The notes beneath the pieces were generated by a model, which did not search any database, had not been told where the DNA came from, and saw only the letters and a program-made list of their open reading frames with translations. Shown here piece by piece: positions 3,651 through 64,000 of a stretch of DNA of 64,000 bases (the first letter of the stretch is position 1; the number at the start of each line of letters is the position of its first letter). Both the position numbers and the translations under genes were made by a program. The DNA is from Scyliorhinus canicula. Lineage: Eukaryota. The DNA is taken from the NCBI RefSeq assembly GCF_902713615.1, contig NC_052151.1, forward strand, positions 85,301,073 to 85,365,072, read 5' to 3'.

Positions 3651-4825
3651 AATTTTTAAAACTGTCAATACTGGAAGTCTGAAATAAAACCAGAAATGAA
3701 TGGAAATAGAGCGGATCCAATAATATTGACAGGCCTGCTGGGTATTTTCAACACTACTTTATTTTGGAGTAGGATCAGCATTTAATCAGGCTCTCATTCA
3801 CTACATGATAAGTTCATGATTTAGCTACTTATTTAGAGTGGAAGCCAAGTAATGGCTCAATATTTCCCACAGAAACGAGCAATTTATCATCCAGATAGAG
3901 AGCGGTGTGGCAGGAAATAACAATTTTTCATCCATACAAACAGGACTATGCTCTTTGTTTTAAATAGGTGCTTACTTCCTAGTTGATTCTGGCATAATAA
4001 ATCATGTTTTATTTCTAAAGAGGGTACAAAATTAATATATCAAAACTCTAAAACCACCAGCTGCAAAACAGGTTGCATAACTGGAAAGAAGGTCATGTCT
4101 GCTTAGTCCTTGTATCAAGTCTGGCACACTCGCATAATAAACAGCGATGTACCTCATTTCCTTTTTCATGAGTGGTGTTTAGAAATTAAAACCTGGTTAA
4201 AGTTGTGAATTTTCAAGTTATTAATTGTGGTTTTAATAAATTGAACTTGAGTGTTATCTAGTACAAAAAAATCCCTCTGTCAATGATCTGCTATTAATAA
4301 AAAATTGATTTTGATTACTCCTATTTTTTAAAGGCAGCAATTTTTAAAAAAAATACAGCACCATGCACATTGAATTTCATCCAAGCTGCTGCATTGGTCA
4401 TTTTATAAAGAGTGAAAGATCTACACGGATCCAGAGGGCTAGGGAAAAAGGAGTGAAAGTTTTGTTAATTTTAACTATAAACAATTTATTCTACCTGGAT
4501 GGTGTTCAGTATTACATTTGTATGCATAGAAAAATAGAACTTTAGATAAGTTCCCCCACCAAAAAAATCCATGCTGCCTTTATTGTCTGCAGTGCCCAGA
4601 AACTAGGTCTTTGGTGCCAGGCATCACCATCTCTACAAAGACTAAGAACCAAGATTCAAGAATCTTCCTTAGTGGACATCCACAAAGAAGAACAATCCCA
4701 CAAGTCTCTATTGTAGACTAATATAGTCAAAGTGGTAAGTATATTATTGTGCAGCCAATTATATGTTACAGTCTTGGTAAGCATGCAATGAGTTTAGATA
4801 TCCTTGATAGAATATTTTTGGGTTT

Positions 4826-30104: not shown

Positions 30105-30864
30105 CGTGGAGCAGCAGCTGGAAGAGGCTCAGGCTCCGGGTGACCGGGAAGTCAATGGCGGAGCCGGCGCGGCTGCGGCCACGTGATCACTGCAAGCGGC
30201 TCTGGGAGTCCAGCTAAGATTTATTTTACAGGCAATCCAAGAGGAAGGAAATAAAACAATGCAGCAAAGCCCAACCCCGATCAGTCCGGTGTCTTGCAAT
30301 TATCAATATGCATCTATGCCGTGTTTCTTTTTTGGAGGTTAACAACTAAGCAAGTTGAAGCAATGCACAGCAGCTCGGCGGTTAACCTTTCATCTACGTT
30401 AACGTGCGTACTTCCAGGAGTTTAACTTCATCAATACCTCACCCTCCGCCCAATATTAATTCAAACCTTTCCAGCTGCAATTAAAAACTAATGGTCTGAG
30501 GAGCCCGGTCATATGGGGCCTTGAGAATTGATTCCGTTCCAATACTGCCATTGGCGATTTCTAATGTGACCGCCCCTCCCCGGTTCTGTATTTTCGACCC
30601 CGGCTCCCTTTCAGCGTCGGTTTGGACTTGGCAAGAGGGCGGGGACTTCACGTTGGTCCAATCCGATCGGGAGACTTCGCCAGATTGACTGGCTGTATAT
30701 CCAATGGGAGGGGTCTGCGTTCGGGGTCAATCAGCGCGGCTGGTGGGAGGGCCCAGGCGGAGCGCGCGCGGGGTTTGGAAGCCGCCAGTGCGCGGGACGG
30801 CAGTGGCGGTTTGAATCTCCTCTCCTGAGTGGAGGAGGTGAGGATCCAGCTGAACAACCCTGGG
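30105..30864. promoter_or_regulatory. CpG-rich bidirectional promoter / 5' UTRs of CCDC25 and ESCO2
   Basis: Non-repetitive CpG-rich block. E-box CACGTG 30180-30185, ETS/YY1-like GGAAGT..ATGGCGG ~30148-30162, GC boxes ~30570 and ~30638, CCAAT at 30658 and 30701, CHR-like TTTGAA 30810-30815 preceded by GGCGG. Confidence 0.8.
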
Positions 30865-30887
30865 ATGATTCCGTCTGTGCCGGACAA
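30865..30887 (+). CDS. ESCO2: Putative coding end of ESCO2 exon 1 (MIPSVPD), phase 2
   Basis: gggATG context; donor AA|GTGAGT at 30888; in frame with exon at 38616 if spliced directly. Confidence 0.45.
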
Positions 30888-33800
30888 GTGAGTGGATGAG
30901 GGGGGCGGACAGGTTAGTTCGTTGGTCGGAGCCCGCTCGACAGAGAAGAGCCACCTTTCTGAAACAACAAGTTGGATTCGTATATCCGGGAGGGACTTTT
31001 CAAACAAAAATTCGGTCTTGACTTTATGTTGCCTCCTAAATCCTCCGATCAGGATTCCAACCATGCCACATCATTGCAAAAGTGTTAACTAAAGTCAAAG
31101 ATTATATTTAGGGGCAAGGTTTATTCATAGAATTTACAGTGCAGGAGGCCATTCGGCCCATTGAGTCTGCACTTAAGCCCTCACTTCCACCCTATCCCCG
31201 TAACCCAATAACTCCATCTAACCTTTTTTGGTCACTAAAGGCAATTTATCATGGCTAGTCCACCTAACCTGCACGTCTTTGGACTGTGGGAGGAAGCCGG
31301 AACACCGGGAGGAAACCCACGCAGACATGGGGAGAATGTGCAGACTCTGCACAGACAGTGACCCAGCGGGGAATCGAACCTGGGACCCTGGTGCTGTGAA
31401 GCCACAGTGCTATCCACTTGTGCTACCGTGCTGCCCCTTTTGAGTGTTGGCCTTCGTGACGGCTTTGCTGATTTTTAAGGTGGTTGGTCGCACCGTCCTT
31501 CTATAGGGCCCTTCTTTGTTCCTGTCCAATTAACCTTGCTTGGTTACATTATTATCGTCAAAACATCCAACAATGGCTTCTCTTCTCACGCTACAGCCAG
31601 GTTCAGTCAGCAGTTAGGAAGGCAAATGCAATGTTAGCATTCATGTCAAGAGGGCTAGAATACAAGGCCAGGGATGTACTTCTGAGGCTGCACAAGGCTT
31701 TGGTCAGACCCCATTTGGAGTATTGTGAGCAGTTATTTTTTAGAACAGTACAGCACAGAACAGGCCCTTCGGCCCTCGATGTTGTGCCGAGCAATGATCA
31801 CCCTACTCAAACCCACGTATCCACCCTATACCCGTAACCCAACAACACCCCCCTTAGCCTTACTTATTAGGACACTACGGGCAATTTAGCGTGGCCAATC
31901 CACCTAACCCGCACATCTTTGGACTGTGGGAGGAAACCGGAGCACCCGGAGGAAACCCACGCACACACTGGGAGGACGTGCAGACTCCTCACAGTCAGTG
32001 AGCCAGCCGGGAACTGAACCTGGGACCCTGGAGCTGTGAAGCATTTATGCTAACCACCATGCTACCGTGCTGCCCAAACCTCTAATATTCCAATGGGGAG
32101 AGGGAATAACATCGTTATCAGGTTTCCTGATTCTGATAAACAGGTTGCCGACCTGGACGTTAACACATGTTTCTCTTTCCACAGGTGTTGCCCGACCTGC
32201 TGAGCATTTCCTGCATTTGGTTTTCATGTTAACCTTCCAGTATGTTTTTAAACCATACACGAACGGGGCAGCACGGTGGCCTAGTGGTTAGCACAACCGC
32301 CTCACGGCGCTGAGGTCCCAGGTTCAATCCCGGCTCTGGGTCACTGTCCGTGTGCAGTTTGCACATTCTCCCTGTGTCTGCGTGGGTTTCGCTCCCACAA
32401 CCCAAAAATGTGCAGAGTAGGTGGATTGGCCATGCTAAATTGCCCCTTAATTGGAAAAAATAATAGGGTAATCTAAATTTTTTAAAAAACCATACACGAA
32501 CTATGCTCCTCTGGAAGATCGGTTTTAAAAAAGTATTCAAAAACAAGCCATGCGAAACATAAAACAATTGTTACCAGAATGAAAGAAAAACTTGCCCAAA
32601 AGAAAAAAAACACATGGAAAGGTCCAATTCCTGCAGAGCTGGGTCAGAGGGGTTGATTCCCAGTGGGTCAGAACGGAGGAGAGTCTGTGCAGTGGGTCGG
32701 GATTGAAAGCACTAGCAACAGCGCCGCTCCCGATAGCCCCGGGGAAGTACTCAGGGAGTCCGGTAATAATAGCTTCATTGAGAATTTGGAGGCAGTTTCG
32801 CCAACACTTTGGGTTGGGGGCTGGGTCAGGGGAAGTGCCGATTCGGGGGAACCACAGATTTGAGCCAGGGAGGTGGAATGGAAATTTTCAGAAATGGGAG
32901 AAGGGGAATTAAGACAGTAAAAGATTTGTTTCTTAGGGGTCGGTTTGCAGGGCTGAAGGAGCTGGAAGCGAAGTATGGGCTGGAGCAGGGGGAAATGTTT
33001 AGATACAGGCAGGTTCGAGATTTTGCCAGAAAGGAGAAACAGAGCTTCCCAGTTGAGCCCCGTATCTATGGAAAGATGTGCTGACCTTGGAAGGGGTCTA
33101 GAGCAGTGTTAATATAGAAAATACAGCACAGAGCAGGTCCGTCGGCCCATGATGTTGTGCCGAGCTTTTGTCCTAGATTAAGAACAAATTAATCTGCACC
33201 CCATCATTCTACTGTAATCCATGTACCTATCCAATAGCCGCTTGAAGGTCCCTAATGTTTCTGACTCAACTACTTCCACAGGTAGTACATTCCATGCCCC
33301 GCTACTCTCTGGGTAAAGAGCCTACCTCTAACATCCCCCCTATATCTTCCACCGTTCACCTTAAATTTATGTCCCCTTGTAATTGTTTGTTCTACCTGGA
33401 AAAAGTCTCTGACTGCCTACTCTATCTATTCCCCTGATCATCTTATAAACCTCTATCAAGTCGCCCCTCATCCTTCTCCGTTCTAATGGGAAAAGGTCTA
33501 GCACACTCAACCTTTCCTCGTAAGACCTACACTCCATTCCAGGCAACGTCCTGGGTTTTGTACAGCTGCATCATCACCTCACGGCTCTTAAACTCAATCC
33601 CTCTGCTAATGAACGCTAGCAAACCATAGGCCTTCATCACAGCTCTATCCACCTGAGTGGCAACTTTCAAAGATCTATGAACATAGACCCCAAGATCTCT
33701 GCTCCTCCAGATTGCCAAGAACCCTACCGTTAACCTTGTATTCCACATTTATATTTGTCCTTGCAAATGGACAACCTCACACTTTTCAGGGTTAAATTCC

Positions 33801-36800
33801 ATCTGCCACTTCTCAGCCCAGCTCTGCATCCTATCTATGTATCTTTGCAGCCGACAATAGCCCTCCTCACTATCCACAACTCCACCAATCTTCGTATCAA
33901 TCTGTTGCGACGCTCCTGATCGCGCATATCTGGCATGTGCACCGATAATCGGGCATGCATGCGCAGTGCGGCCGAATTTGTTTTATCTGTTCCTTGTCAT
34001 TTTGAAGGCCGCTCGCAACCGGCATTATTAAAAACCGGCTGTTGCCCTTCCGATTTGCGCGATCAGGAGGGTCGAAATGGACGGCTCCGCGATCCTCCTG
34101 ACACCCGCCCCACGATCCACCTGTGGGTCGTGCCCACGAGTTTGACAATGCCTGGTCTAGAGGAGGTTCACATGAATGATCATTGGAGTGAACAGTTTGT
34201 CATATGAGGAGCGGTTGAGGACTCTGCGTCTGTACCCGTTGGAATTTAGAAGGACGAGGGGGGATCTTATTGAAACTTACAGGATTCTGTGTGGCCTGGA
34301 TAGAGTGGACGTGGAGAGGATGTTGCCACTTGTTGGAAAAACTAGAACCAGAGAACACAATCTCCGACTATAGGGACGATCCTTTAAAGCAGAGATGAGG
34401 AGGAATTTCTTCAGCCAGAGCGGGTGAATCTGTGGTATTCTTTGCTGTAGAAGGCTGTGGAGGCCAAATCACTGAATGTCTTTAAGACAGAGATAGATAG
34501 ATCCTTGATTAATACGGGGATCAGGGGATGGGGCTGTTTAGCAAAGGGCTAAATCGCTGGCTTTGAAAGCAGACCAAGGCAGGCCAGCAGCACGGTTCAA
34601 TTCCCGTATCAGCCTCCCCGAACAGCTGCCAGAATGTGGCGACTAGGGGCTTTTCACAGTAACTTCATTTGAAGCCTACTTGTGACAATAAGCGATTTTC
34701 ATTTCATTTCATTTCATTCTGGGGAGAAGGCAGGAGAATGGGGATGAGAAAAATATCAGCCATGATTGAATGGCGGAGCAGACTCGATGGGCCAAGTGGC
34801 CTAATTCTGCTCCTTATGTCTTATTATCTTGTGGTCTTCGGCTCTGCACCCAGGTCCTGATATATTCAAAGTTCACTGCTCTCCCAGGTGCAGCGCCTAG
34901 TCTGCCTGGCCCACCTCATGATCCACTCCTTGTCCAGGAAATGGTGCAAACGCATCACCATCGCCCTCTGCAGCTCGTTTCCCTGGGGCTTCCTCATTCG
35001 CGCCCTATGCGCTAGATCCACTTCCAGAGGCCGTGCGAATACTGCCTCTGCCAGCAGCTTCTCCAGCATCCTCCCCACACGTGCGCCAGTGACGCTGCCT
35101 CACTTCCCTCCGGCAGACCCACAATCATAATATTCTGCCTGCATGACAGGTTCTCCAGGTCTTTGACTTTCTCCTGGAGCCGCTTCTGCTGATCCCGTAT
35201 CAGCCCCATCTCTGCTGCCATTGAGGCGAATTGCTCCTCATGTTCCTCCTCCATCTTCTGGATCGCCTGACCCTGGGCCTCCAGCCTTGTCTCCACGCGG
35301 TCATCACCGCCTTAATCGAATCCACCACCCGGGCCAGCTCCTCCAGATCCTCCTTGCTTTGGTGGGTGAACATCCCCTTCAGGAAGCCCACCAGCTGCTT
35401 TGTTGACCACTGAGCCGGCAGAGCTCCCTGACCCTCTGCCATCTCCACATGACACCACACCAAATTTTGCAGTCTGTTCCCCTCTTTTGCGACCACTTTT
35501 GGCCCTCGGCTCCATACACCAGTGGGTCACTCTCTTCCACTAACTCCCCTGCACCTTTTTGCCTCCTCACATCCACCTGTTAACCGGGGAAAGGGTCCGA
35601 GAAAAACGCCACAAGTGGGTGCAACCAAATATGCGACCACTCACACCATGGGCGCCCCCAGAAGTACCAAAAAGATTTTTACAACGATATAGGAGTTTTA
35701 TGGTCACCATTGATTCATTCTAAATTAATTGAATTTAAATTTGTCAGCTGCCATTGTGGAGTTTAAATTCCTGTTTCCAGAGTAATAGTCTGGCCCTCTG
35801 AATTACTAGTCCAGTAACATTGCACATAAACCATAGAAGAACTCAAACATTGCTGATGAGACAGCATTTTTTTGCCCATCGCTAATTGCCCATTAGGTGA
35901 TGGTTAGTTGCCTTCTTGAACTGCTGCAGTCCATATACTGTTTGGGTCGGAGCTCCAGATTTTGACTCGCCAACAGTGATTTGGTTTCAAGTCAGGATTG
36001 TGTGGCTTGGCGGGGAACTTGCTTAGGTGGATTGGCCATTAGAACATAAGAACTAGGAGCAGGAGTAGGCCATCTGGCCCCTCGAGCCTGCTCCGCTATC
36101 CAAAAGGTTAGGCGGGATACTGGGTTACGGGGATGGGGTGGGCTTAAGTAGGGTGCACTTTCCAAGGGCTGATGCAGACTCGATGGTCCGAATAGCCTCC
36201 TCCTTCACTGTAAATTCTATGATTCTAAGTCTTGTTAAGTTGCGGCAGTGCCTCTTGCGAATGGTTCACACAGCTGTCATTGTGGGTTGGTGGTGGATGA
36301 GAAGCCAATCATGCGGGCTGCTTTGTTCTGGATGGTGTCAAGCTTCTTGAGTGTTGCTGGACTTGCACTCATCCAGGCAAGTGGAGAGTATTCCATCATA
36401 CTTGAGTCTTGAAGAGTCAGGGGGTGAGTTACTTTCACTCAAGAATTCCCAGCTTCTGGCCTGCTCTTGCAGCTGCAGTATTTAATATGGCTGGTCCTGT
36501 CCAGTGTCTGGACAATGGTAATCCCCCCAGGATGTTGATGGTGGGGAGTCAGCGATGGCAATACCATTGAATATCAAGGGGAATTGTTAGCACCATGTTG
36601 CTGTACCCAGTGGACAAATTGATCCTGCTGTAACACATGCCTTGGAATGGAAGGATAATTTTAAGATCGTGAACCTAACCTCCTCAGCATTTTCTTTCAT
36701 ATGGACCATAAATGTCCCAAGTAGCCCATCAAGATTTATTAATTTATGCAACAAAGAAAACGTGGTGAAAACCTTTAATAAATCTGCCAAATATTAGGTA

Positions 36801-39800
36801 GGATGTAGTACACAGTAAATTTAAGGTGTTTAGTGGCAGTAAATCATGTTAGAATAAGTAATGTGTACTCCCTGACTGCTTTTGTTTATTAATAATAATA
36901 ATAATAATAATGATCGCTTATTGTCACAAGTAAGCTTCAATTAAGTTACTGTGAAAGCCCCTAGTCGCCACATTCCGCGCGCTTGTTCGGGGAGGCCGGT
37001 ACGGGGATTGAACCTGTGCTGCTGGCATTGTTCTGCATTACAAACCAGCTAATTAGCCCACTGTGCTAAACCAGCCCCTATGTAGCATATTTATGTAGCA
37101 TATTTAGTTTCTATTCAATTTCTTTTCTAACTTGGAGGAAAAATGTCAGCAATTCCTTGAAGGAAGAGGAAGCATAGCTCTCTAAAATATGATTGGTAAA
37201 TTGTGACATTTTATTCTTTATATAATTGAATATAGGTTAACTCATTCCTAAAAATATTTTGGCTGGATTCTCCTTTCCTGAGTCTAAGTGTTGACACCGG
37301 GGCAGAATTCGTGGACTTTCATGACCGCAACTCAGGTGGCCAAACCCAGATCGGAGGGACTAGCACCATGTGGACACAATTGATTCCAATGAAAAACTGC
37401 CAAATTCACCGGGTTGGTGATTGACACTCGGGAGGCTAAGCTACAACCACATAAACACATTATAATGCCCACACACACTCATCCCAGCCAACAAGATGGC
37501 ACTGGTTGTGCTAGAGCGCATCCATACAGCTGATAGGTTGGCTGGGGCCAGAGGGCATCTGGGGGGGACACGCCTATACGACCCATGACCCGAAGTTCTC
37601 AGTGGGCTGTCAGCCACATGCGCAGCTATTTGATTGCCTTTCCAGCTGTGGCAATGGTGCTCCATGCCCGTCCAACCTGACCCCACAGCCCACCTCCTGG
37701 TCACCTCTCGCCACTCCCGGCCCTGGCAGACGTGCCCCCCCGGCCAGTGGCACAACTGTCAGCAAACTATGATGGTGTTGGACACCTTTCTTGCTCTCTC
37801 AGCAGCCACGACACGGGTTTCATGATTTCTAAAAATGCAAGTGAACGCCGCTGTCGGGAACTCGGCCCATCGGAGGCGGAGAATCGCAGAGGCCCGGGAG
37901 AATACCGCTAATAATATGCAAACGGTGTTTACTGTATGTGCGTTCTGGACCGCATTGACGCTGCTGTCGAGGTGATGGAGAATTGTGATTTGCCGTCAAA
38001 TCGGCACCTGCCACGCATTTGCCATCAAGAACCTATTCTCCACCTAATCGTGTGTCCCAACTTCGGCGTCAGCCAACAGAGAATCCCGTCCCTTGTTTTA
38101 GAGGTATCTCTGCTCCATTCTGAATGAAAATATTTATTGCCTTTCCCAGGTAGCCATAGTCTATTAATACAAGGCATTCAAAACAGAGACTAATAAATTC
38201 CTTAAACCGTTATTCTAATTTAATGGGAACCTGGTGTTTTAATTCTGTGAAGTGTTCCAAATACATTTTCAGCGAGACTAGAGATTCATGGGTTGAGTTT
38301 TTAAAAAGACATGGTTGCTAGAAAAAGAAGCTAGTTGCTTTTATCCATATGTTAAGTGGACTAAAACATTTCAATTATACACAGTTTATAATGATGAACT
38401 GTAATTGGTCCAGGATATATGCGATAGAAATGTGATGGTCCTTTCAATTGATTCTTGTTCCATTGTTGCAGCTCTGATTTATTACTGTGCCAAATTGGTG
38501 CTAGGAATTATGTATGTGCATAAATCACTGAATTCACACTGAAGTAAAGTTCAAGTGTAAAATATTGATTTTTCTATGATTTAACTGTCACTAAGTAATG
38601 TTTTATTTTCAACAGTCCGGATTACACCCCCATCAACGTAGCGATATCTGAAGCATTAACAAAGAAAACAATCCTTGATTTTGTTCATTTTTCTGGTTCA
38701 AGAATATCATCCCCTGAAATAACTTCTTCGACAATGTTAAGGCAGTCGCAACATATTTTTAATTTTGATAAAGAAAATCTTGACAACTGTGCTTCACCAC
38801 AAAAATTGTTGGTTAATCAATGTCGAGATGATTCACAGGAGAAAGTCTCTAGGCTGTCTCTCAACAGAAAGGGCAATCTGCACAGGGCTGCAAGTTCTTT
38901 CTATCGGAAGCGGGAACAGCTTTATCTCGCCCCTCTTGAGAGAAAATTGTTTTTTGAAAACAAGCTTTCCAAATGCGCCAATGTCGATGAACAACATGAT
39001 GTGAAAAGTGCAAAGTCTCAAATGAAGAAACAAACTGAAGCAAAAGTAAAGCTGCCGGTCGGTTCCAGTTCTAAAGCTCCATTAAATTCAAAAGAAACCC
39101 GAATTAAACAAAAAGTCAGAAATAATGGCACTACAGGAATGACCCATCAGAACAAAAGTGCATATTATGGATCTGTAACCAAGACACTTCTTTTCACTTC
39201 AAAGGTGAATGGCCTAAAGGTGCAGCAAAAACCTCGAATCCAATTAGGTGCAGCTTTCTTTTCCACAGGCAGAAAATCCCAGTTTTTGCTGAACCAGAAA
39301 TTGCCAGACCCCAGTGCCAAATCATTTCCATCAAATCGCGGCTTCCAGCATTATCACAGTAAAAGCAACACGAACGATGTCAAGAAAGCTATTAAGGAAG
39401 CTCTTCAGGTAGTTAATGACAGTGAAATGACTAATGAGATTCGAGAGAGCACTTATAATATGAGAGCGGAACCAAAAGTGGGAAGAAAAGCTGCAAAATA
39501 TGCACAACTGCCTGCGAAACTGGTTGAACGTTTGCTTACGCGAGAGGTGAAAATAGTACTTCAGCGAATTGAAGTGGCACGACATCCAGTATCGATAACC
39601 AAGGAGAAGACATTGCAAAAGGATGATTTGACAACAAAAGTAAGATAAAAGAATTTTATTAACTTTTTAACTACTCTCCTCCCATCAATATTTAATTAAA
39701 TGTGCTGCTTGGGATATTTAATGAATGCCCTAGCATAATTAGTGACGACTTAATTTTTTTGTAGCGCTCTTATTTGAAGATGTAAATCCAAATGTGTGGA

Positions 39801-54800: not shown

Positions 54801-57800
54801 CTTTATCATATTTCATTTTTCTTTTCATCTTAAGAGCTTTAATACTCGAGAAACTGGTTTGGCATTTGAAGATGGAAGCACCCCTGAAGGAAATAATGAC
54901 AAAAATGAAGGTAACCGAGTCAGTCATGACTAGGGCTCAATACGGAATGAGAACTTGTCGTGGTCCATTTTATACTAATTTTGGATTGGAACGTACTGAT
55001 GCCCACTTTTTAAAGAGTCTTATCTATTCTTCATTTAGATCTATCGATATCTTCCTGTAAAATAGACGTGTATGGTTACTTGAGTGAAAATGTGTCTGTA
55101 CTCCGCTATGATGCCCGGAACTGCCCAATTTCTTAAATAATGTCCATTTAAGAAAGATGACAAAAAATAACATATGAATCAGTGCCTTTAAGGGAGGTGA
55201 TGACAAAATATATCGGTGGAATAGATCAGATTGTATCTCAAATTACCAGTTGGTATTCAGAGTACAACTGAAAATGGTAGACAAAGCGTCACCGGACTCG
55301 AAACGTTAGCTCTTTTCTCTCCCTACAGATGCTGCCAGACCTGCTGAGATTTTCCAGCATTTTCTCTTTCGTTTCAGATTCCAGCATCCGCACTAATTTG
55401 CTTTTATTTTAGATTCACAATCAAAATTGGCAGAGTAAGATGGTATGTTTTCAATAGCCTGTTGAAAACTGACAGCAACTTTGGGATTTAGTGTAGGGAA
55501 AGATTATGATGGAAATCCAGAATGTTCCTGTCTGTCTCTCTCTGTTTTGCCACAGGTGGAACAGAGTCTACACTGTAGACTCCCATTCCCCATCATCTCC
55601 CTCACAAAAACTTTGAGCCAGCAGTCAAGGAAATCAGTTGATGTGATGACAACTTCCCCCTGTTCCACTCTCATTGGAACACCGTAAAATGTTGCACCTT
55701 GTTCAGTCAGGTGTAAGTAGGTTAATAGCGGGTTTCCTCCGGGTGCTCCTGTTTCCTCCCACAAATCCTGCAAGGCACGCTGTTAGGTAATTTGGACATT
55801 CTGAAGTCTCCCTCTGTGTATCTGAACAGGCGCCAGAATGTGGCGACTAGAGGCTTTTCATAGTAACTTCATTGCAGTGTTAATGTAAGCTGACTTGTGA
55901 CAACAAAGATTATTATTATTATTATTAAATGAGTAGTAACTTTGTAGAACAACAACCTGGACCAAAAAAATAATTTTATATTGTTGCAGTGTTTTTAAAT
56001 ATCTCCATTGTGATTTTTTTTCAACTAGTTTCAATTTTTTTCATGCTATTTTAGCTTTAGTATCTATGACCATAAATAGGAGCTGACCCTTTAACCGCTC
56101 TGTCATTCAATCAGATTTAACCCAACTGCTACCTTACGCTAGTTCTCCAATATATGTCCCAATCTTTCTTTCACTCTGTTAAATTAAAAAAAAGTGATTT
56201 AGTACTTTCCATTCCTGGCTAGCGATCTGTGAGAATTAATTAACGTGATTAGCTGATTGATCGACATGATGAGGCGATGGTACTCTGTGCTGGGAATATT
56301 CATTAAGGAATGTTGCAATACTCTTCTTGGCAAGAGAGATAAAGTTCTCATCACAGAGATCATGAGATCTCTCCGTGCCACTGAGCTCAACCCTTGTTTT
56401 GTTGCTGATTGTAAAGTCCAGTTTGTAAATATACAGACAAATGTTTAGTATTTGTAGCAATTATAATTAAAATAAAGTGTTGGGTTTTGTGATAGGGCCA
56501 CTTTCCTTAGTTAAGAATTCTTTTAGAAATGTAATGAGCATGTTTGTCTCTTTCAGGCTCATCCGCAGCTGGTGCTATCTATCCCATCTTTAATACTCCT
56601 TGCACAAGCAGTAAAAGGTACAAACTTATGAATGTGTGTTTCGTATGCATAAGGTTTATGGTATGATATACTACCATATACATAATTCCTGTCTATTGTT
56701 TTTGGGAAGCATTAGTTTTCAGCAGGTTACTAAAGTTGCAGGAACTGGAGACAAATATGAGTGACTAAAACCGAGTATCCTATTGTGCAATTAGGCAATG
56801 TTCTTTCCAGGTTAAATCAATGTAAATAGTGTAAGGTAATGACTATCTATTTGCCTTAGAGAAGCAAAGGCATCTGGGGGTACCCACAACCTGCATTACT
56901 ACTTTTAGTGATCTGTGTTACAAGGCCAAAAAGCAAACATTAACTATCTTAAAATTCAAAGTACTAGGAAGTCTGAAGCTTGCTTCTTAAAATAGACTGA
57001 TGTGCAGACTACTAACGCAATACTAAATATAAAATGGTCATTATACAGTTTGCATGGATTTTTTTCATTCCTTAAACTTCAAATTGTCTGATGTAGCAGG
57101 TGTTGAATTCATTTTCAGGATAGAAGCCTTTTTTATTCGTAGTGTCTATTCAAAGGCGGTATCAAGATTTGTCTAAATACTTCCGGTGGCGGTCATGGAG
57201 GAGTAGGTCTCACATTTGATAGCTCCCGTTTGTGACGGAATTTTTGGACCTTTTCTCCTGTTTTTTCCCCCAATTTTATTGGATAAATCGGTGGAGAGTA
57301 AGACGGTGAGGAGAAATCCCCCACTACTGTATGTAGAATTAGACTAGAAGTGGCCGTGTAAGAAGACAAAGTTCAGCAAGAAAGACGCGGGCAGAACCGG
57401 CCACGCAGGAAAACATGGCAGAGAAGCAGGCCCGCAGGGAGGCGGCACAGTGGTCGACGGAGCAGCTGGTGAAATTTTTTGATGAATGTTTCGCCAAGCT
57501 TAAGAAAGACATGTTGAACCCGATTAAGGTATCAATTGATCAGGTGGCGCAGGGTCAAGAAACTCGTGGGCGTGCGATTCAGGAGGTGGAGAAAAAGGTG
57601 TCTGAGCACGAGAAATATATAACCGTGGTGGAGGCCAAGGTGGAGATGATGAATGACCTCCAGAAAAGAATACAGGAGAAGCTGGAGGACTTGGAGAACA
57701 GATCCAGGAGACAGAACTTGAGAATCGTCAGCCTCCCTGAGAGCAGTGAAGGATCGGGTGTGAGGGCTTATGTGGCAAGCATGTTGGAAAAGTTGATGGG

Positions 57801-60800
57801 GCTGGGGTGTTCCACAGCCCCTGGAAGTGGATATGGACAGGTTAAATGTGATTTGAAACAAACCTGTTCAACCTTAACCTGGTACTGTAAGACTTCTTAT
57901 TGTTTTTTGCTCACCATTGTTTCTCTCTCTTCTCTTCTCTTTCCCCCCACTCCACTTAGGCCAACTGTTCCTAGTTCCCCTTTAGCACACTGCTCAACTT
58001 TGTTCTGTCATTCACATTTTAATCTCTTTAAGTGCCACTATCAGCACCCTTCTTAGCTTTAATCACCTCCATTTACATTCCTTTTGTCTTCTGTCCTCGA
58101 CACCTTTGTCAATCACCGCCTATCGCTGGCCCCCTATCCAGCCCACCACCCCCACCCGCTACAGTATAAATCTGGCTCCTTCTCTCCCCTCAGATGCTGT
58201 CAGACCTGCTGAAATTATCCAGTATTTTCTGTTTTTGTTTCAGATTCCAGCATCTACGATTATTCTATATTTAATGATAGGTGGAAGAATAGCAAATGAC
58301 TAGAGTATGTTAGTGGCAGTTTGGCGGTGAAGAAAAATGAAAACAGCAAAAAAGTTTTGACATTTAAAAGAAAGTCCATGGGCTAGATTCTATGATTGCC
58401 GACACCAAAATCGCATTCGGCAATCGGCCGGAGAATCTGTGTTTACGCTGGAATCGGGCTGCGCAGTTTTTGCAATGTTCCACCCCCTTAAAAAGGGCGC
58501 GCATGCCGAATGGACGGCCTCTGTCATCTGAGGCCTTCTCCTGATGGGCCGAGTCCCCAACGGCATCACAGTCCAGTGCCGCTGCCAAAGTCGGGGGGGG
58601 GGGCAGGGGGAGCCGTTCCCTGGCAGGGGAGAGGGGGGTTCCCGGAAGTGGCAGAGTGCAGTTTTTGGCAGGCTGGGTCCACATGCGGCCGACGCCATGT
58701 TGCACGATGCGGCCCCCTGCATGCATGGCCATGGACCCAGCCATTCAGCAGCCGTATCCGCCGGTAAAGCCAGGGGCTTTACGCTATACAGCTGCTAGCC
58801 CCCCGCCCCCCCCCCCCGGCACGTCTTTGGACTATGGGAGGAAACCAGAAGGAACCCTCGCAGCCATGGGGAGATGAGGAGAATGTGCAGACTCTGCACA
58901 GACGGTGACCCAACAGGGAATCAAACCTAGGACCCTGGCGCTGTAAAGCCACAGTGCTATCTACTTGTGCCGCCGTACTGGCCCCTACCTTACCCTGTGC
59001 TAATTATCTAGTTGCACCATGAAGGTAAGAACAATTTCTGCAAGATAAGTGTCTCACGTGATTTCTTTTCCTTGTTTAGACATGAGCTGTCGAAAGGCGA
59101 GACTACTTTTGTTGGATCAAGTGACCCTTTTGCTGCTGACCCTGGGATGCCCTGCCTTGCACCTCTACAGAAGAACAAAAGAAAAGATTTTGACAAAATA
59201 TTCAGTGACCAGCTTATAATAGTAAGCCTTAGCATGATGTAAAGAGTGCCTGCAAGTGATTTATATTTTCAAATGAGCTAAAATGATAATTTAAGGTACA
59301 TTAAGTTTCTAACAAAGCCAAAGTGAAAACTCTTACATCTTCAGATTTTAAATCAATTTGCAGAAAATCTGCCATCATTTCGTACTTTTAATTGGATCAC
59401 CTGGTATAGTTAAAATAGATTTTAGCTAACATTATATCACACACAGGTTGATGTAGAGCAGAATAACTTTGAAAGAGCTGGTGAATTAAATCATGGCCCA
59501 AATTTGTTGGCTCCCAGAATTCCCATGGAACAATTTCTTTGGGACTGTCGAGGGGTCATGTAATGCTTCATGGGATCTGAGTCCATTTTCTGACCACCTG
59601 GACATGGGAAGATATGAGCCTTTGCCTTTAAAGTTACTGCTCACAGACCTCAAGGTTTTTCACTGGAATTCAAAGTTAAGAGGAAACCTTTCATTATTAA
59701 AAATAGGAAAACATTAATGATTTGCACTGGTGAATGGGTGGCCAGATGGCATAAACTCAGGATTATCATTAGAAGATGAAGGAGTAACTTAATTTTTATA
59801 ATTGGTTAGAAGTAGAAACCCAAGTAGCTATTGTAACAGATCCATAAACCATGTTAAGGAAAAGCGAATGGGTGGGATTCTTTGTTAGCTGATGCCAAAA
59901 TCGGGAAGGGCAATTGGGCGGAGAATCGGTTCTAAATCGCAATACTCCAGCACCTCGACAGTGGTGTCAATACGTCCCGGAACGCACGTACGGTCAACAC
60001 CGTTTGCATATCATTAGCGGGCCCAACCCAATATTCCCCAGGGTCTCCGCCAAATGGGCTGAGTTCCCAACGGTATGGTTCACTTGTGCTTTTAAAAATC
60101 GTGAAACCGGCATGGCGGCTGCTGAAGGAAAGAGAGGGGGTACGAGAAGTGTCCAACATCGTCATAGTTTGCTGACAGTCGTGAGGAAGGGGGGGGGGGG
60201 TTGGCCAGGAGGTGGGTCGGGTGGACAGGTACAGAAAACCATTGCTGCAGCCAGCAAGACAGCCATGCAGCTGCACACACCGCTAACAGCCCACTTTGAA
60301 CGGAGTGTCACAAGTCGTATAGGTGTCTCTCCAGGCCATCCCTCTAGATGCCCTCTGGTCCCAGCCGACCCATTAGCTGGATGGGCGCGCCCCAGCACAA
60401 CCAGTGCCAATTTGTTGTCTGGGATGAGTGTATCTGGGGATTATAATGTGTATGTGCAGCTTGTCAGCCTCCCGAGTATCAATCACGGACCCAACGAATC
60501 CCGCACCGTTTTTCGTTGGAATCGTTTGTGTTCCACGTGGCACCGGTGCTAGTCTCTCCATAGAAGCGAATCGGTCCAGGTGTGGCTCCAGTTTTTGTGT
60601 TGTGAAAATCCATGAATTCTGCGATGACGTCAACACTTAGTCTCAGAAATGGAGAATCCCGCCCAATGTGTTTGAAAAGTTAACAATCTGAGATATTATA
60701 GAAGGGCAAAAATCAGGATTAGAATAGATAGCACCTGCTAATTAGTAAGTAGGAACTCTAGTGCATAGGACCAAATGGCCTCCTCCATGTTGTAATTCCC

Positions 60801-63077
60801 CAAAGTGTAAAATAAACAAACCCCATTTCTTGTGGAACCCTTCGTCTGCCCCTCTCAGAGCAAATTTCACCTTCCCCAAGTATAGGAACTCCATTACATA
60901 CCCCAGTCACCCAGAGGCACATCAAGGGAAAAGCTGACCACCCCTACAGAACCCGCCTGCGAGCGATCAACAAGGCTAAGACGAGGGCAGCACGTTGGCC
61001 TTGTGGTTAGCACTGCTGCCTCACAGCACTTGAGGTCCCAGGTTCAATCCCGGCTCTGGGTCACTGTTTGTGTGGAGTTTGCATATTCTCCCCGTGTCTG
61101 CGTAGGTTTCGCCCCCACAACCCAAAAATGTGCAGAGAGGTGGATTGGCCACACTAAATTGCCCCTTATTTGGAAAAAATTATTGGGTAACCTAAATTTA
61201 AAATAAAAAAACAAGGCCAAGGCACCCATCTGCAACCTCGGCAAGTTTGACACTCCGAATATGGTTTCCAGGGACCAGGCTACAAATGTCACCTGTCGGA
61301 CCTCTGGTGCTGAAAACTAGGCCTCTTCCGCAACGCTTGCAGCTATTCTCTACCCCATCAAACAGCCGGCTCATCCTCGCCTTCGCTAAGTGTGCCTAGT
61401 GCACCACTTTTAATTGAATCAATCCCAGCCTCGTCCACGAGGTTGAGGCGTTAACCCTCTGCAGCGCCTCGCACCATAGCCCCTCCTCCAATACCATCCC
61501 AGCTCCTCTTCCCACCTGTCTGTAATCCATTCCATGGACACCTTATCTTCCTCCATGATCCTCTTGTAAATCGTGGAAATGACTCTAACCTCCAGCCCCA
61601 TCACCGACAGCCCCTCCTCCAGGAACAAAGAGGAGTGCCGCTGGAAAGCTCGGATGTTCCACACTTGCATGTATCTAAAGCCCTCCTCACAGTGGAGCCC
61701 AGACTCATCCTCTTCGCTAACCCCCCCCCCCCCCCCCCCCACCACACTCCAAGCTCGCAACCCGCCCCTCAAAAATAAATCCTTACCCCTCTCCTGGCAT
61801 CCATTCTCCCCGGCTCAAATCCACTGTTCCCTTCAATCAGCTTCATTCTCAAGCCTGCCCTCAACTTAAAGTACTGTGGGAATTGCCTCCAAATCATCAG
61901 CGTGGCTACCACAACAGGACAACAGCCTCACGGCGACGAGGTCCCAGGTTCAATCCCGGCTTTGGGTCACTGTCCGTGTGGAGTTTGCACATTCTCCCCG
62001 TGTTTGTGTGGGTTTTGCCCCCACAACCCAAATATGTGCAGGGTAGGTGGATTGGCCAGGCTAAATTGCCCCTTAGTTGCAAAATAATGAATTGGGTACT
62101 CTAAATAAAAAAAAAAGAGAGTTGGGAGAGGAGGTGGGAGCCGGGATATGGGCTGAGGCTTTGCGGAGGGTGAATGCGTCCTTGTTATGTGCAAGTCGCC
62201 CCTCCTCCACCTTGGGAAACTCGAACCCATCCAGGAATCCTCATCCCCTCATCCAGTTTAAAGTGGTGCATATGATGGTGGCAAGGATGAGCAGGTTTCT
62301 TTGTGGAAGTGAAGGATAGGTGTTTGGGGGGGGGGGGGTCTGTGATTCACGTCCACATGTTTTTGGCATGTCCAGGGTGAAGGGGAGTTCTCAGATATTA
62401 TGTCCAAGGTTCTGGGGGTGAAGGTGTCCCCGAGTCAAAGGTCTCTATATTTGGTGTGTCAGAAGACCCGGCAGTGCAGGGGGGAGAGGGAGAGGGACTG
62501 ATGTATTGGCGTTTGCTCCTTGATAGCCCGGAGACGGATTTTGTAATGTTGAAGGGACTTTGAGCCGCCAAAGGCAGGGAGGTGAGTGAGCAACCTGGCA
62601 GAATTGCTGTGGTTAGAGAAGATCAAGTTCACCCTGCTGGAAGTGAAGGGTTCACTTGGTGGTGGAAACCGTTCATCGATTTCTTCAAGGAGGAATGAGG
62701 GGTCAACGAGGGGGAGGGTGGCTTTCGGGGGGGGGGGGGGGATTAAAAGGGGAAGGCGGGACGTGGCACAGTGTCAGGGGGCTGGAGTTTGTTGGATTGG
62801 TGTTCTTATGCTCTTTGGTTGTTCTTTTGATATTTTGTATATTTATATTTTGTTGAAAAGCCTTGAATAAAAGAGTAATGCTGATGACCACTTGTGGTAT
62901 TTACCTTGGTCATTTATTGGTATTCTTTTTGTTGCCATTTTTCAGGATGCAGGTCAAAAACATTTTGGAGCTGTGATGTGCAAGTCCTGTGGAATGATTT
63001 ATACAGCGGCCAGCCCTGAGGATGAAGCACAACATATTCAGCATCACCAAAGATTTCTAGAAGGACTCCGTTACGTG
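30865..63077 (+). CDS. ESCO2: N-acetyltransferase ESCO2 (establishment of sister chromatid cohesion 2), 5' partial. Secure exons: 38616-39639, 54835-54910, 56557-56617, 59080-59221, 62946-63077. Start uncertain (ATG 30865 in exon 1, stop-interrupted exon 37143-37195, or ATG 38734)
   Basis: ESCO2-specific motifs [20 protein letters not shown] and IYPIF, PIP-like [13 protein letters not shown], and zinc finger CKSCGMIY...HIQHH; consistent splice phases; synteny with CCDC25. Confidence 0.95.
31125..31437 (-). mobile_element. V-SINE (HE1-like)
   Basis: Full head ggggcagcacggtagc and V-domain. Confidence 0.85.
31740..32075 (-). mobile_element. V-SINE (HE1-like) inserted in a CR1 fragment
   Basis: Head, V-domain and CR1-like tail. 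Confidence 0.85.
32081..33059 (+). repeat. ~980-bp direct duplicate of 27383-28370
   Basis: Near-identical sequence including unique DNA, SINE with TSD and L1 5' junction. Confidence 0.95.
33110..33897 (-). mobile_element. CR1 LINE fragment
   Basis: [36 protein letters not shown]. Confidence 0.85.
34145..34830 (+). mobile_element. CR1 LINE 3' fragment with nested short SINE (34530-34718)
   Basis: [25 protein letters not shown]. Confidence 0.85.
34835..35666 (-). mobile_element. L1-clade 5' UTR plus ORF1 remnant
   Basis: [21 protein letters not shown] (L1 ORF1p motif); homologous to 57180-57845. Confidence 0.8.
37143..37195 (+). other. ESCO2: Ancestral ESCO2 first coding exon ([16 protein letters not shown]) with in-frame TGA
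   Basis: Aligns with human N-terminus MAALTPRKRKQDSLKCD; 53 coding nt, phase-2 donor TG|GTAAAT; TGA at 37158-37160. Confidence 0.85.
37260..38091. mobile_element. Harbinger-like MITE
   Basis: ggctggattctc...gagaatcccgtcc termini; homologous in inverted orientation to 59870-60664. Confidence 0.7.
38616..39639 (+). CDS. ESCO2: ESCO2 large exon 3 (1024 nt; KEN box, Box A, Box B)
   Basis: ttttcaacag acceptor; open frame including ORF 38734-39648; KEN at 38770-38778; donor AAA|GTAAGA, phase 0. Confidence 0.95.
41090..41490 (+). mobile_element. CR1 LINE 3' end
   Basis: [22 protein letters not shown]. Confidence 0.85.
41771..42280. mobile_element. Harbinger-like MITE fragment
   Basis: CpG-rich; right TIR gaatcccaccc. 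Confidence 0.6.
42683..43350 (-). mobile_element. CR1 LINE 3' fragment
   Basis: Typical cataagaaatagga tail on + strand; RPHLEY-like region. Confidence 0.75.
43640..44220 (+). mobile_element. CR1/L2-group LINE 3' fragment (second copy on minus strand ~35860-36585)
   Basis: [17 protein letters not shown]...[12 protein letters not shown] thumb-region motif. Confidence 0.75.
44496..45064. mobile_element. Solo LTR-like element
   Basis: Starts TGTTA, ends TGACC; flanks atct/gtct (imperfect 4-bp TSD); no coding content. Confidence 0.5.
45280..46292 (-). mobile_element. Solo LTR (~1 kb)
   Basis: TG...CA termini, flanks accc/cccc, TATAAA and AATAAA on minus strand; homologous to 50837-51490. Confidence 0.7.
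46844..47160 (+). mobile_element. V-SINE (copies 13463-13745, 25052-25310, 39995-40225, 52622-52935)
   Basis: Head, V-domain and CR1-type tail ggcctcctcctgcact. Confidence 0.82.
47643..47858. mobile_element. Palindromic element, probably Penelope-terminus derived (second family)
   Basis: About 85-bp inverted arms; 15-bp TSD tgcatttaaataaca (47628-47642, 47859-47873); single-arm relatives at 55280-55410, ~58180-58260, ~27430-27530, ~52260-52370. Confidence 0.75.
48237..50836 (-). mobile_element. CR1 LINE (endonuclease and RT remnants)
   Basis: [39 protein letters not shown] motifs in minus-strand ORFs. Confidence 0.92.
50837..51490 (-). mobile_element. Truncated LTR related to 45280-46292
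   Basis: Shared blocks gtgtgcttaacact, ggagtcg.caggtg, aataaaac..tacacc.attagtaagt. Confidence 0.65.
51605..51976. mobile_element. hAT (Charlie-like) non-autonomous element
   Basis: Perfect 16-bp TIR caggggtgggcaaact; 8-bp TSD atctaaat; inserted in a CR1 fragment. Confidence 0.92.
54835..54910 (+). CDS. ESCO2: ESCO2 exon 4 ([25 protein letters not shown])
   Basis: Long pyrimidine tract and AG; donor G|GTAACC; phase 0 to 1 bridges exons 3 and 5; poorly conserved at protein level. Confidence 0.75.
56257..56390 (+). ncRNA. Candidate intronic C/D-box snoRNA-like RNA
   Basis: ATGATGA 56266-56272, CTGA 56381-56384, TTGA/TCAA ends, 14/15-bp internal stem. Confidence 0.3.
56557..56617 (+). CDS. 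ESCO2: ESCO2 exon 5 ([21 protein letters not shown], Box C)
   Basis: tttcag acceptor, AG|GTACAA donor, YPIF motif. Confidence 0.93.
57180..57845 (+). mobile_element. L1-clade 5' UTR plus ORF1 N-terminal remnant
   Basis: Coiled coil followed by [20 protein letters not shown] in ORF 57415; truncated at ~57845. Confidence 0.85.
58380..58800. mobile_element. Harbinger-like MITE fragment
   Basis: Left TIR gggctagattct; CpG-rich; truncated by a SINE fragment. Confidence 0.6.
59080..59221 (+). CDS. ESCO2: ESCO2 exon 6 (...KIFSDQLII)
   Basis: tttag acceptor, GTAAGC donor, ends in conserved DQLII. Confidence 0.93.
59870..60664. mobile_element. Harbinger-like MITE
   Basis: TIRs gggtgggattct / agaatcccgccc; 3-bp TSD AAT. 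Confidence 0.78.
60800..61920 (-). mobile_element. L1-clade ORF2 3' fragment with nested V-SINE (60984-61210)
   Basis: FRYMQV...IYKRIMEE...WEEELG homologous to the 28.3-28.5 kb element. Confidence 0.75.
62116..62875 (+). mobile_element. L1-clade ORF2 3' end
   Basis: [35 protein letters not shown]; AATAAA 62866-62871. Confidence 0.75.
62946..63077 (+). CDS. ESCO2: ESCO2 exon 7 (C2H2 zinc finger)
   Basis: [44 protein letters not shown]; 132 nt, phase 0-0. Confidence 0.97.
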
Positions 63078-63179: not shown

Positions 63180-64000
63180 GTTTTAGCATTTAACATTTTA
63201 CAAAATAAAAACATTACACCCCCAGATACAATAACCCCTGTACTACCCCACACAGTTGACGGTAACTAACTCTCCGTAATGCAAAATAAACAGGCCCCAT
63301 ATCTTGCGGACCTCCTCATTTGCCCCTCCCCAGAGCAAATTTCAGCTTCTCAAGATGAAAGCACTCATTGGATCCTCAGCTACGCCGAGGCACAGGGTGG
63401 AGCAGCTGACCTCCACCACAACAGAACTTGCCTGTGAGCGATCAACAAAGGGAAGGCTAAAATAGCTGTCCTCGCCGCTCCCGTCTGCAACTGGGGCAGG
63501 TTTGACACCCCGAGTATGGCCCGCATAGGATCCAGCTCCAAATCCACATGCAAGATCGTCAACATGATGCTGAAAAACGACCCCCAAAATTTCTCCAACT
63601 TCAGGCAGGACCAGCACATGATTAGCTGGGACCCTCCCACACCGTTAGCAAGTATCATCTACCCCCCTTAAACAGCCGGTTCATCCTTGACTTCTTCAAA
63701 TGCGCCCTGTGCACTACCTTCAACTGTATCAACCTCAGTCTGAAGCCGAGGTTGAGGAATTCATTCTCCGCAACGCCTCACCACAGTCCAACCTCCAGCA
63801 CCATCCCCAACTTCTCCCGCTTGGCCTTGAACTCCTCCATAGACACCTTATGCTCCTCCAAAATACTCAGAAATCTCAGAGGACCCTACCCTCTGAATCT
63901 ATTACCGACAGCACCTCCAACAACAAGGAGGCAGGCAGGCACTATCAGAACCTTTCTAGCAAAGTCCCGCACCTGCATATACCAAAAGTTCTCGTGCAGA
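63180..64000 (-). mobile_element. L1-clade ORF2 3' end, continues beyond window
   Basis: IMCWSCLKLEKFW...ILLWWRSAAPP-like in minus ORF. Confidence 0.75.

Follow-up and report, generated by a model that had tools for sequence, protein, structure and literature searches.

Exon death is a known course of gene evolution, in which a constitutive exon decays through splice-site mutations into an intronic relic and an AUG of the former leader comes to serve as the start. ESCO2 is an essential gene of sister-chromatid cohesion, and its cartilaginous-fish protein begins with a T-P-R-K-R-K patch. From its sequence, we take this patch to resemble a signal for nuclear targeting, short and basic, with a T-P-x-K kinase site overlapping it. 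Here we describe a start exon of ESCO2 that very probably died on the branch of the small-spotted catshark, Scyliorhinus canicula, with the mRNA bypassing it by joining exon 1 to exon 3.

The ESCO2 N-terminus has been dissected into Box A/PBM-A, which binds MCM, Box B/PBM-B, Box C, a PIP box, and the CDK2 site S75 (10.1101/666115; PMC10656103; PMC12903202). The extreme N-terminal T-P-R-K-R-K patch was not put to the test in the ESCO2 literature consulted (10.1101/666115, PMC10656103, PMC12903202, and PMC9884251), and a literature search found no mention of ESCO2 together with Scyliorhinus.

The window, that is, the whole 64,000-nucleotide stretch of NC_052151.1 analysed, is the ESCO2 locus of S. 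canicula. ESCO2 isoform X1 (XP_038655533.1) matched it at 99-100% along exon 3 and the four exons identified after it (residues 7-486). The long open reading frame at 38734-39648, together with the frame running from 38617, encodes the N-terminal half of the protein, and the catalytic exons are located past base 64000, outside the window. Regarding family membership, XP_038655533.1 carries the zinc finger PF13878 and the acetyltransferase PF13880 in its C-terminal part (precomputed Pfam hits), which places it in the ESCO2 family. It also contains the Box A/PBM-A, PBM-B (GAAFF), Box C, and PIP box strings at residues 103, 219, 382, and 439, conserved across all sharks compared, and the catshark protein retains, intact, every ESCO2 motif tested in the literature. 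No second copy of ESCO2 turned up in the S. canicula proteins searched. The features of the gene within the window are the following:

30738-30912, forward strand: ESCO2 exon 1, from RNA contigs; its 5' end is a minimum, its main donor is GTTAGT after 30912, and it holds ATG 30865 and ATG 30896.
30865-30887, forward strand: start of RefSeq isoform X1, with ATG 30865 and an alternative donor GTGAGT after 30887; MIPSVPDN is joined to PDYTP.
30896-30905, forward strand: ATG 30896 and the G run at 30900-30905; the six G of the reference put this ATG in frame, so that isoform X2 starts MRGADS.
37108-37129, forward strand: conserved polypyrimidine tract and dead acceptor, with TA in place of the ancestral AG at 37128-29.
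37130-37195, forward strand: relic of ancestral exon 2, with a 13-nt leader and, from ATG 37143 on, 53 coding nt; zero RNA depth.
37196-37201, forward strand: weakened donor GTAAAT, which is GTAAG(T/C) in four other species; the change at 37200 is G>A at position +5.
38616-39639, forward strand: ESCO2 exon 3, the first exon common to all mRNAs, with the DYTPIN block, ATG 38734, Box A, and PBM-B.
54832-63077, forward strand: later intact ESCO2 exons at about 54832-54915, 56553-56627, 59078-59221, and 62913-63077 (tblastn of XP_038655533.1; boundaries approximate).

To place the start exon in its family, we used the proteins of other vertebrates. A full-library protein search with exon 3 gave four relatives, and a second search from the best match gave the cartilaginous-fish ESCO2 set. 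In this set, the protein starts with close variants of M-x-x-x-T-P-R-K-R-K-H-S-S-x-K-D-D-C, followed by (Q/P)DYTPIN. This start is conserved in white, horn, and sevengill sharks, smooth-hound, two carpet sharks, sawshark, devil ray, skates, numbfish, stingray, and elephant fish; besides Scyliorhinus torazame, 13 cartilaginous-fish proteins keep the start exon. Moreover, a TP[RQ]KR core begins the ESCO2 of coelacanth, sturgeon, amphibian, caecilian, turtle, bird, and monotreme, so the match to a conserved vertebrate N-terminus proposed by a first-pass annotation of this DNA is borne out by protein comparison. In S. canicula, the M-x-x-x-T-P-[RQ]-K-R patch is absent from both isoforms and survives only as an untranscribed relic. 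This absence is the finding itself and no reason to doubt orthology.

Re-reading the sequence gave the same relic exon letters that had been reported: ATG at 37143-45, an in-frame TGA at 37158-60 as codon 6, the exon end at 37195, and GTAAAT after it. The reading frame also continues as described, since the TG at 37194-95 and T38616 make up a Cys codon that runs into the exon-3 frame; the S. torazame protein likewise has Cys at the exon 2/exon 3 junction. Within the window, the stretch 37080-37260 is single-copy. Positions 37143-37195 are the orthologue of the ancestral start-codon exon of ESCO2.

For the splice signals, we aligned 200 nt around the start codon of S. canicula with genomic DNA of two carpet sharks (Stegostoma and Chiloscyllium), a sevengill shark (Heptranchias), and a skate (Rhinoraja). 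The relic exon and both flanking intron blocks align unambiguously across the four species. Their acceptor reads TTTTCAG, followed by T, 13-16 nt ahead of the ancestral ATG. In S. canicula the conserved CAG is C-T-A (37127-29), the tract ends C-T-A-A at 37127-30, and the acceptor changes at 37128-37130 are unique to this species. The good acceptor is thus lost, as had been claimed; the ancestral site was not a TAG ending at 37130, since the four-species alignment puts its AG at 37128-29. The weak GAG remnant was also found: up to 60 nt upstream of the ATG, the only AGs are at 37136-37 (GAG) and 37106-07. At the level of the alignment, the relic has lost its splice signals, both the acceptor AG and the donor +5 G.

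Transcripts agree with this loss. Exon 3 is held by 20 S. canicula RNA runs, and we compared the contigs of four of them, from four studies, with 36000-39700. Depth on 37116-37239 was zero in all four runs, with an exon-3 word depth of 10 to about 174; these are assembled contigs, which drop rare variants. The exon-3 match begins at 38612 in each of the four contigs, ACAG being common to both sides of the junction. The letters that precede exon 3 in two runs (X1 and X13) are those of 30879-30908, and the contig of a third (X3) reaches 170 nt further into exon 1. The mRNA junction therefore runs from ...GGACAG, with the donor GTTAGT after 30912, to T38616. The first-pass annotation had proposed to count 30887>38616 against 37195>38616 junctions: the relic is skipped, and the donor is 30912 in the RNA contigs, donor 30887 being implied by RefSeq isoform X1 and not among the RNA contig rows shown for the four runs. 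The relic is absent from the mature mRNA in these contigs, exon 1 being joined to exon 3, so the case in which most transcripts include the exon does not hold.

Both RefSeq isoforms begin in exon 1, skip the relic, and lack the RKRK patch, in line with the earlier proposal that this lineage makes ESCO2 without it; isoform X2 (XP_038655534.1) corresponds to ATG 30896 with donor 30912, reading MRGADS-PDYTP. The stop codon, the loss of the acceptor AG and of the donor +5 G, and the absence from RNA contigs of four studies together uphold the idea of a decaying exon.

A minor or tissue-specific mRNA that still takes in the relic, by way of the GAG at 37135-37 or the AG at 37106-07, is improbable; in it, the exon would act as a non-coding "poison" leader whose short upstream ORFs lower ESCO2 translation. 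The pyrimidine tract and a GT donor persist, inclusion would place a chain of short ORFs ahead of ATG 38734, and contigs cannot prove absence. However, the relic has lost the conserved AG and has only a weakened donor, no isoform that contains it is annotated, and the zero depth in four RNA runs includes one with about 174x on exon 3.

DNA from other catsharks bears on whether the defects belong to the species. A 190-nt contig of DNA run X25 covers 37115-37304 with no gaps and 189/190 identity; the position of its mismatch is not listed and could fall at T37158 of the reference TGA. This run has a TCT insertion at 38777 that is lacking in the reference and in run X27, and it therefore comes from another individual or haplotype. 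Because the X25 contig has a single mismatch, at most one disabling change can be private to the reference. In the reference-sample run, X27, there was no DNA contig on the relic.

We consider it still less probable that the TGA, and perhaps other defects, are assembly errors or private to the reference individual, with an intact exon 2 in most catsharks. The reference does differ from the four RNA runs at 38777 (the TCT indel) and 38905, and from RNA contigs in the G run at 30900-05, and the X25 mismatch is unplaced. Against this, the RNA of four other studies skips the exon, and at 189/190 X25 cannot lack all three of the dead acceptor, the altered donor, and the stop. A rare null allele or an assembly error, both raised earlier as alternatives, is accordingly unlikely. 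Decoding of the TGA as selenocysteine or by readthrough, with the exon still the start of the protein, has next to no chance: nothing beyond the codon being TGA speaks for it, the exon is missing from the RNA contigs, which makes readthrough moot, its splice sites are lost, and relatives have Pro or Arg at codon 6, not Cys or Sec.

Exon death on the S. canicula branch thus stands as the preferred reading, and S. torazame helps to date it. In two assemblies, each with an annotation of its own, this congener encodes MSAITRRKRKHSSPKDDC-PDFTP (XP_072355572.1; GCB60987.1). Ser2 and Ile4 are common to both species, and Pro5, the stop at codon 6, Leu14, and Tyr16 are found only in S. canicula, each one base away from the S. 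torazame residue. The changes specific to S. canicula (T5P, R6*, P14L, and D16Y) map to 37155 (Thr>Pro), 37158-59, 37183 (Pro>Leu), and 37188 (Asp>Tyr).

The relic has changed faster than the rest of the gene. Over its 18 codons, derived residues number 4 in S. canicula vs. 0 in S. torazame; over the 651 columns outside it they number 12 vs. 14, at 94% identity. The excess in the relic was significant both against the rest of the protein (4/18 vs. 12/651; Fisher p = 5e-4) and against the start of exon 3 (4/18 vs. 4/90; Fisher p = 0.025). At the DNA level, changes unique to S. canicula occupy 21/135 ungapped columns of the relic block vs. 85/955 of an exon-3 control (p = 0.02), and the ratio of unique changes between S. 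canicula and Heptranchias is 21:6 in the relic block vs. 85:69 in the control (p = 0.03). The relaxed constraint is confined to the relic. The gene as a whole is under normal constraint and catshark ESCO2 is not a pseudogene, as had been argued from its intact downstream exons; the 94% identity to S. torazame and the even balance of derived changes between both species point the same way.

An origin of the TGA from CGA, suggested in the first-pass annotation, is favoured by parsimony. Codon 6 is CCA in three aligned sharks and TGA in S. canicula. Because the outgroups have Pro (CCA) and the S. torazame protein has Arg, the two steps CCA>CGA>TGA are the shortest path, with CGA as the probable intermediate, and this path agrees with the CpG idea. 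By the time of the ancestor shared by both Scyliorhinus species, Pro6>Arg had already taken the T-P out of the motif. It is the annotated S. torazame protein, and it only, that would date to the S. canicula branch the loss of the acceptor, the altered donor, and the SINE described below. Among S. torazame-like DNA contigs (88% likeness), the flanks were covered at about 5-6% divergence and no contig lay on 37129-37209.

Altogether, we propose the following course. Ancestrally, exon 2 would have carried the ESCO2 start codon and the basic patch, as in other cartilaginous fishes. After the split from S. torazame, the S. canicula branch would have lost the acceptor AG and the donor +5 G, and gained the codon 6 stop through CCA>CGA>TGA plus three further missense changes. 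The spliceosome now joins exon 1 directly to exon 3, and another AUG would take over. The resulting protein keeps Box A, PBM-B, Box C, the PIP box, and the catalytic domain, and lacks 18 ancestral N-terminal residues, including the T-P-R-K-R-K patch.

Since the relic is skipped, translation must start at an AUG of exon 1, the former leader, or at the next in-frame AUG, in exon 3. The candidates would be ATG 30865 with donor 30887, ATG 30896 with donor 30912, and ATG 38734 in exon 3; whichever is used, the RKRK patch is missing. On the 30912-donor mRNA, ATG 30865 opens an 8-codon upstream ORF. The two RNA contigs with exon-1 letters shown have 5 G in the G run, vs. 6 G in the reference. With 5 G, ATG 30896 opens a 13-codon upstream ORF, and with donor 30912 the first in-frame AUG is then 38734, so that initiation at ATG 38734 is a live possibility for this mRNA. 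As a warning on annotation, RefSeq isoform X2 rests on a homopolymer length that the RNA contigs do not share. In the weak alignment of exon 1 with Heptranchias and Chiloscyllium, a block at about 30876-30899 is perhaps old, and ATG 30865 had no aligned counterpart.

More tentatively, and with the balance tilted against it, the N-terminus of catshark ESCO2 could be shorter than in either RefSeq model, or polymorphic, with the length of the G run switching the long form on and off. If true, most ESCO2 would lack 57 ancestral residues, including the DYTPIN block, which is kept in nearly all cartilaginous fishes compared.

Regarding the surroundings of the relic, three features were located in the introns:

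36886-37079, probably reverse strand (from the position of its tail): SINE-like repeat lying 49 nt ahead of the old acceptor; its (TAA)n tail occupies 36890-36911.
37079-37106, forward strand: 13-bp tandem duplication, 2.2 copies with 100% matches, single-copy in other sharks.
37261-37991, no strand assigned: downstream intronic repeat of at least 730 bp, with a 69% identical inverted copy at 59934-60663.

The upstream SINE had been noted before and is a 165-bp interspersed repeat that ends at 37079 and has seven further copies in the window; over it the summed DNA-contig depth is very high, and hundreds of contigs diverge at 37078/37079. At the place of the catshark SINE and its (TAA)n tail, Stegostoma has an empty site with contiguous flanks: the block 36815-36849 aligns to Stegostoma 1863-1897, about 100 nt from the ATG there vs. 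294 nt in the catshark. The 13-bp duplication, exact as reported, lies 22 nt upstream of the old acceptor. Because of the empty site in Stegostoma, the SINE and the duplication are derived.

The downstream repeat had been called a MITE. We rejected this label for 37261-37991, which has a length of at least 730 bp and lacks terminal inverted repeats; none were found in 37200-38150. The intron measures about 610-670 nt in Stegostoma, Heptranchias, and Chiloscyllium vs. 1420 nt in S. canicula, and this repeat makes up most of the extra catshark length. An Rfam scan of 36500-38600 gave no match.

At the functional level, shark ESCO2 had no run of four basic residues other than the patch. The catshark protein still has a conserved KNKRK near residue 428, which might cover nuclear import. 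The patch would be dispensable or compensated in S. canicula. The catshark offers a natural deletion of a patch that is conserved yet untested, while the gene is otherwise well conserved and a congener keeps the patch, and this makes the question of whether the patch is dispensable or compensated a testable one. Besides, the locus offers a clean, datable exon death with start-codon replacement in a lineage of very slow sequence change.

Finally, this locus can be set beside four known systems. The RefSeq models of S. canicula (XP_038655533.1 and XP_038655534.1) skip the relic and start in exon 1, like the RNA contigs. However, they are silent on the relic, and X2 needs 6 G at 30900-05, where the 5 G of two RNA contigs break the frame. 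In S. torazame, ESCO2 exon 2 is an orthologous 18-codon start exon with 14/18 residues identical and the same Cys junction. It is open there and annotated as used, whereas the S. canicula exon is skipped and carries a stop, with three missense changes besides.

Human Roberts syndrome alleles affect the same gene and share an early stop in the ancestral frame. These alleles remove the enzyme, whereas the catshark mRNA bypasses the stop and keeps the motifs (10.1101/666115) and the catalytic domain. As for exon death in general, this kind of event, with start-codon turnover, has precedents, and the new starts are already part of the RefSeq models. What sets the catshark apart is that the loss concerns a motif kept throughout jawed-vertebrate history, in an essential gene, and on one species branch within a genus.

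In Scyliorhinus torazame, residue 6 of the ESCO2 proteins (P0123 and P0124) is already Arg, replacing Pro. With this Arg, the conserved T-P-R-K motif has lost its T-P, and the basic run is extended to RRKRK. Skates have an additional in-frame ATG inside exon 2, 9 nt upstream, giving MRKMSKHTPKKRK (Rhinoraja locus L001, 2001-2012; also the protein P0014). This upstream segment lines up with the catshark leader GGAGGAAAA.

Downstream of exon 2, the intron opens with ~50 nt (GTAAGTTGTGACATTTTGCAG...ATTGAATATAGGATAATT) that are near-identical in the sevengill and carpet sharks (alignment A1 around the ancestral ATG, columns 174-222; loci L002-L004), and their catshark counterpart at window 37196-37243 is still recognisably similar in the same alignment. 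This likeness may reflect a conserved intronic element, or merely very slow change. The ESCO2 introns also contain a ~730 bp interspersed repeat, with two copies in opposite orientations and 69% identity (window 37261-37991 and 59934-60663). Because of the first copy, the intron after the dead start exon measures ~1.4 kb here; in three other sharks its length is ~0.6-0.7 kb.

The end of exon 1 (window 30876-30899, TGTGCCGGA.AAGTGA.TGGATGA) presented 92% identity to positions 3779-3802 of the sevengill locus L003, although the alignment is weak. GGATGA of the ATG at 30896 falls inside this weakly aligned block, and the same weak exon 1 comparison with L003 displayed no aligned sevengill counterpart of the ATG at 30865. 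The reference contains six G at window 30900-30905, the number needed for the in-frame RefSeq isoform X2 (MRGADS...), whereas the contigs of RNA runs X1 and X13 contain five. Either a polymorphism or an assembly error in the homopolymer could account for this difference.

Within exon 3, the reference is the odd haplotype at 38777, 38905, and 39600. An in-frame TCT insertion after window 38777 was present in all four S. canicula RNA runs and in the DNA run X25; the reference and the DNA run X27, from the reference sample, lack it. Window 39600 was T in three of the four RNA runs. All four carried G at window 38905, which changes Arg to Gly directly before Box A and thus converts FYRKREQ to FYGKREQ, the form that S. 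torazame shares with them.
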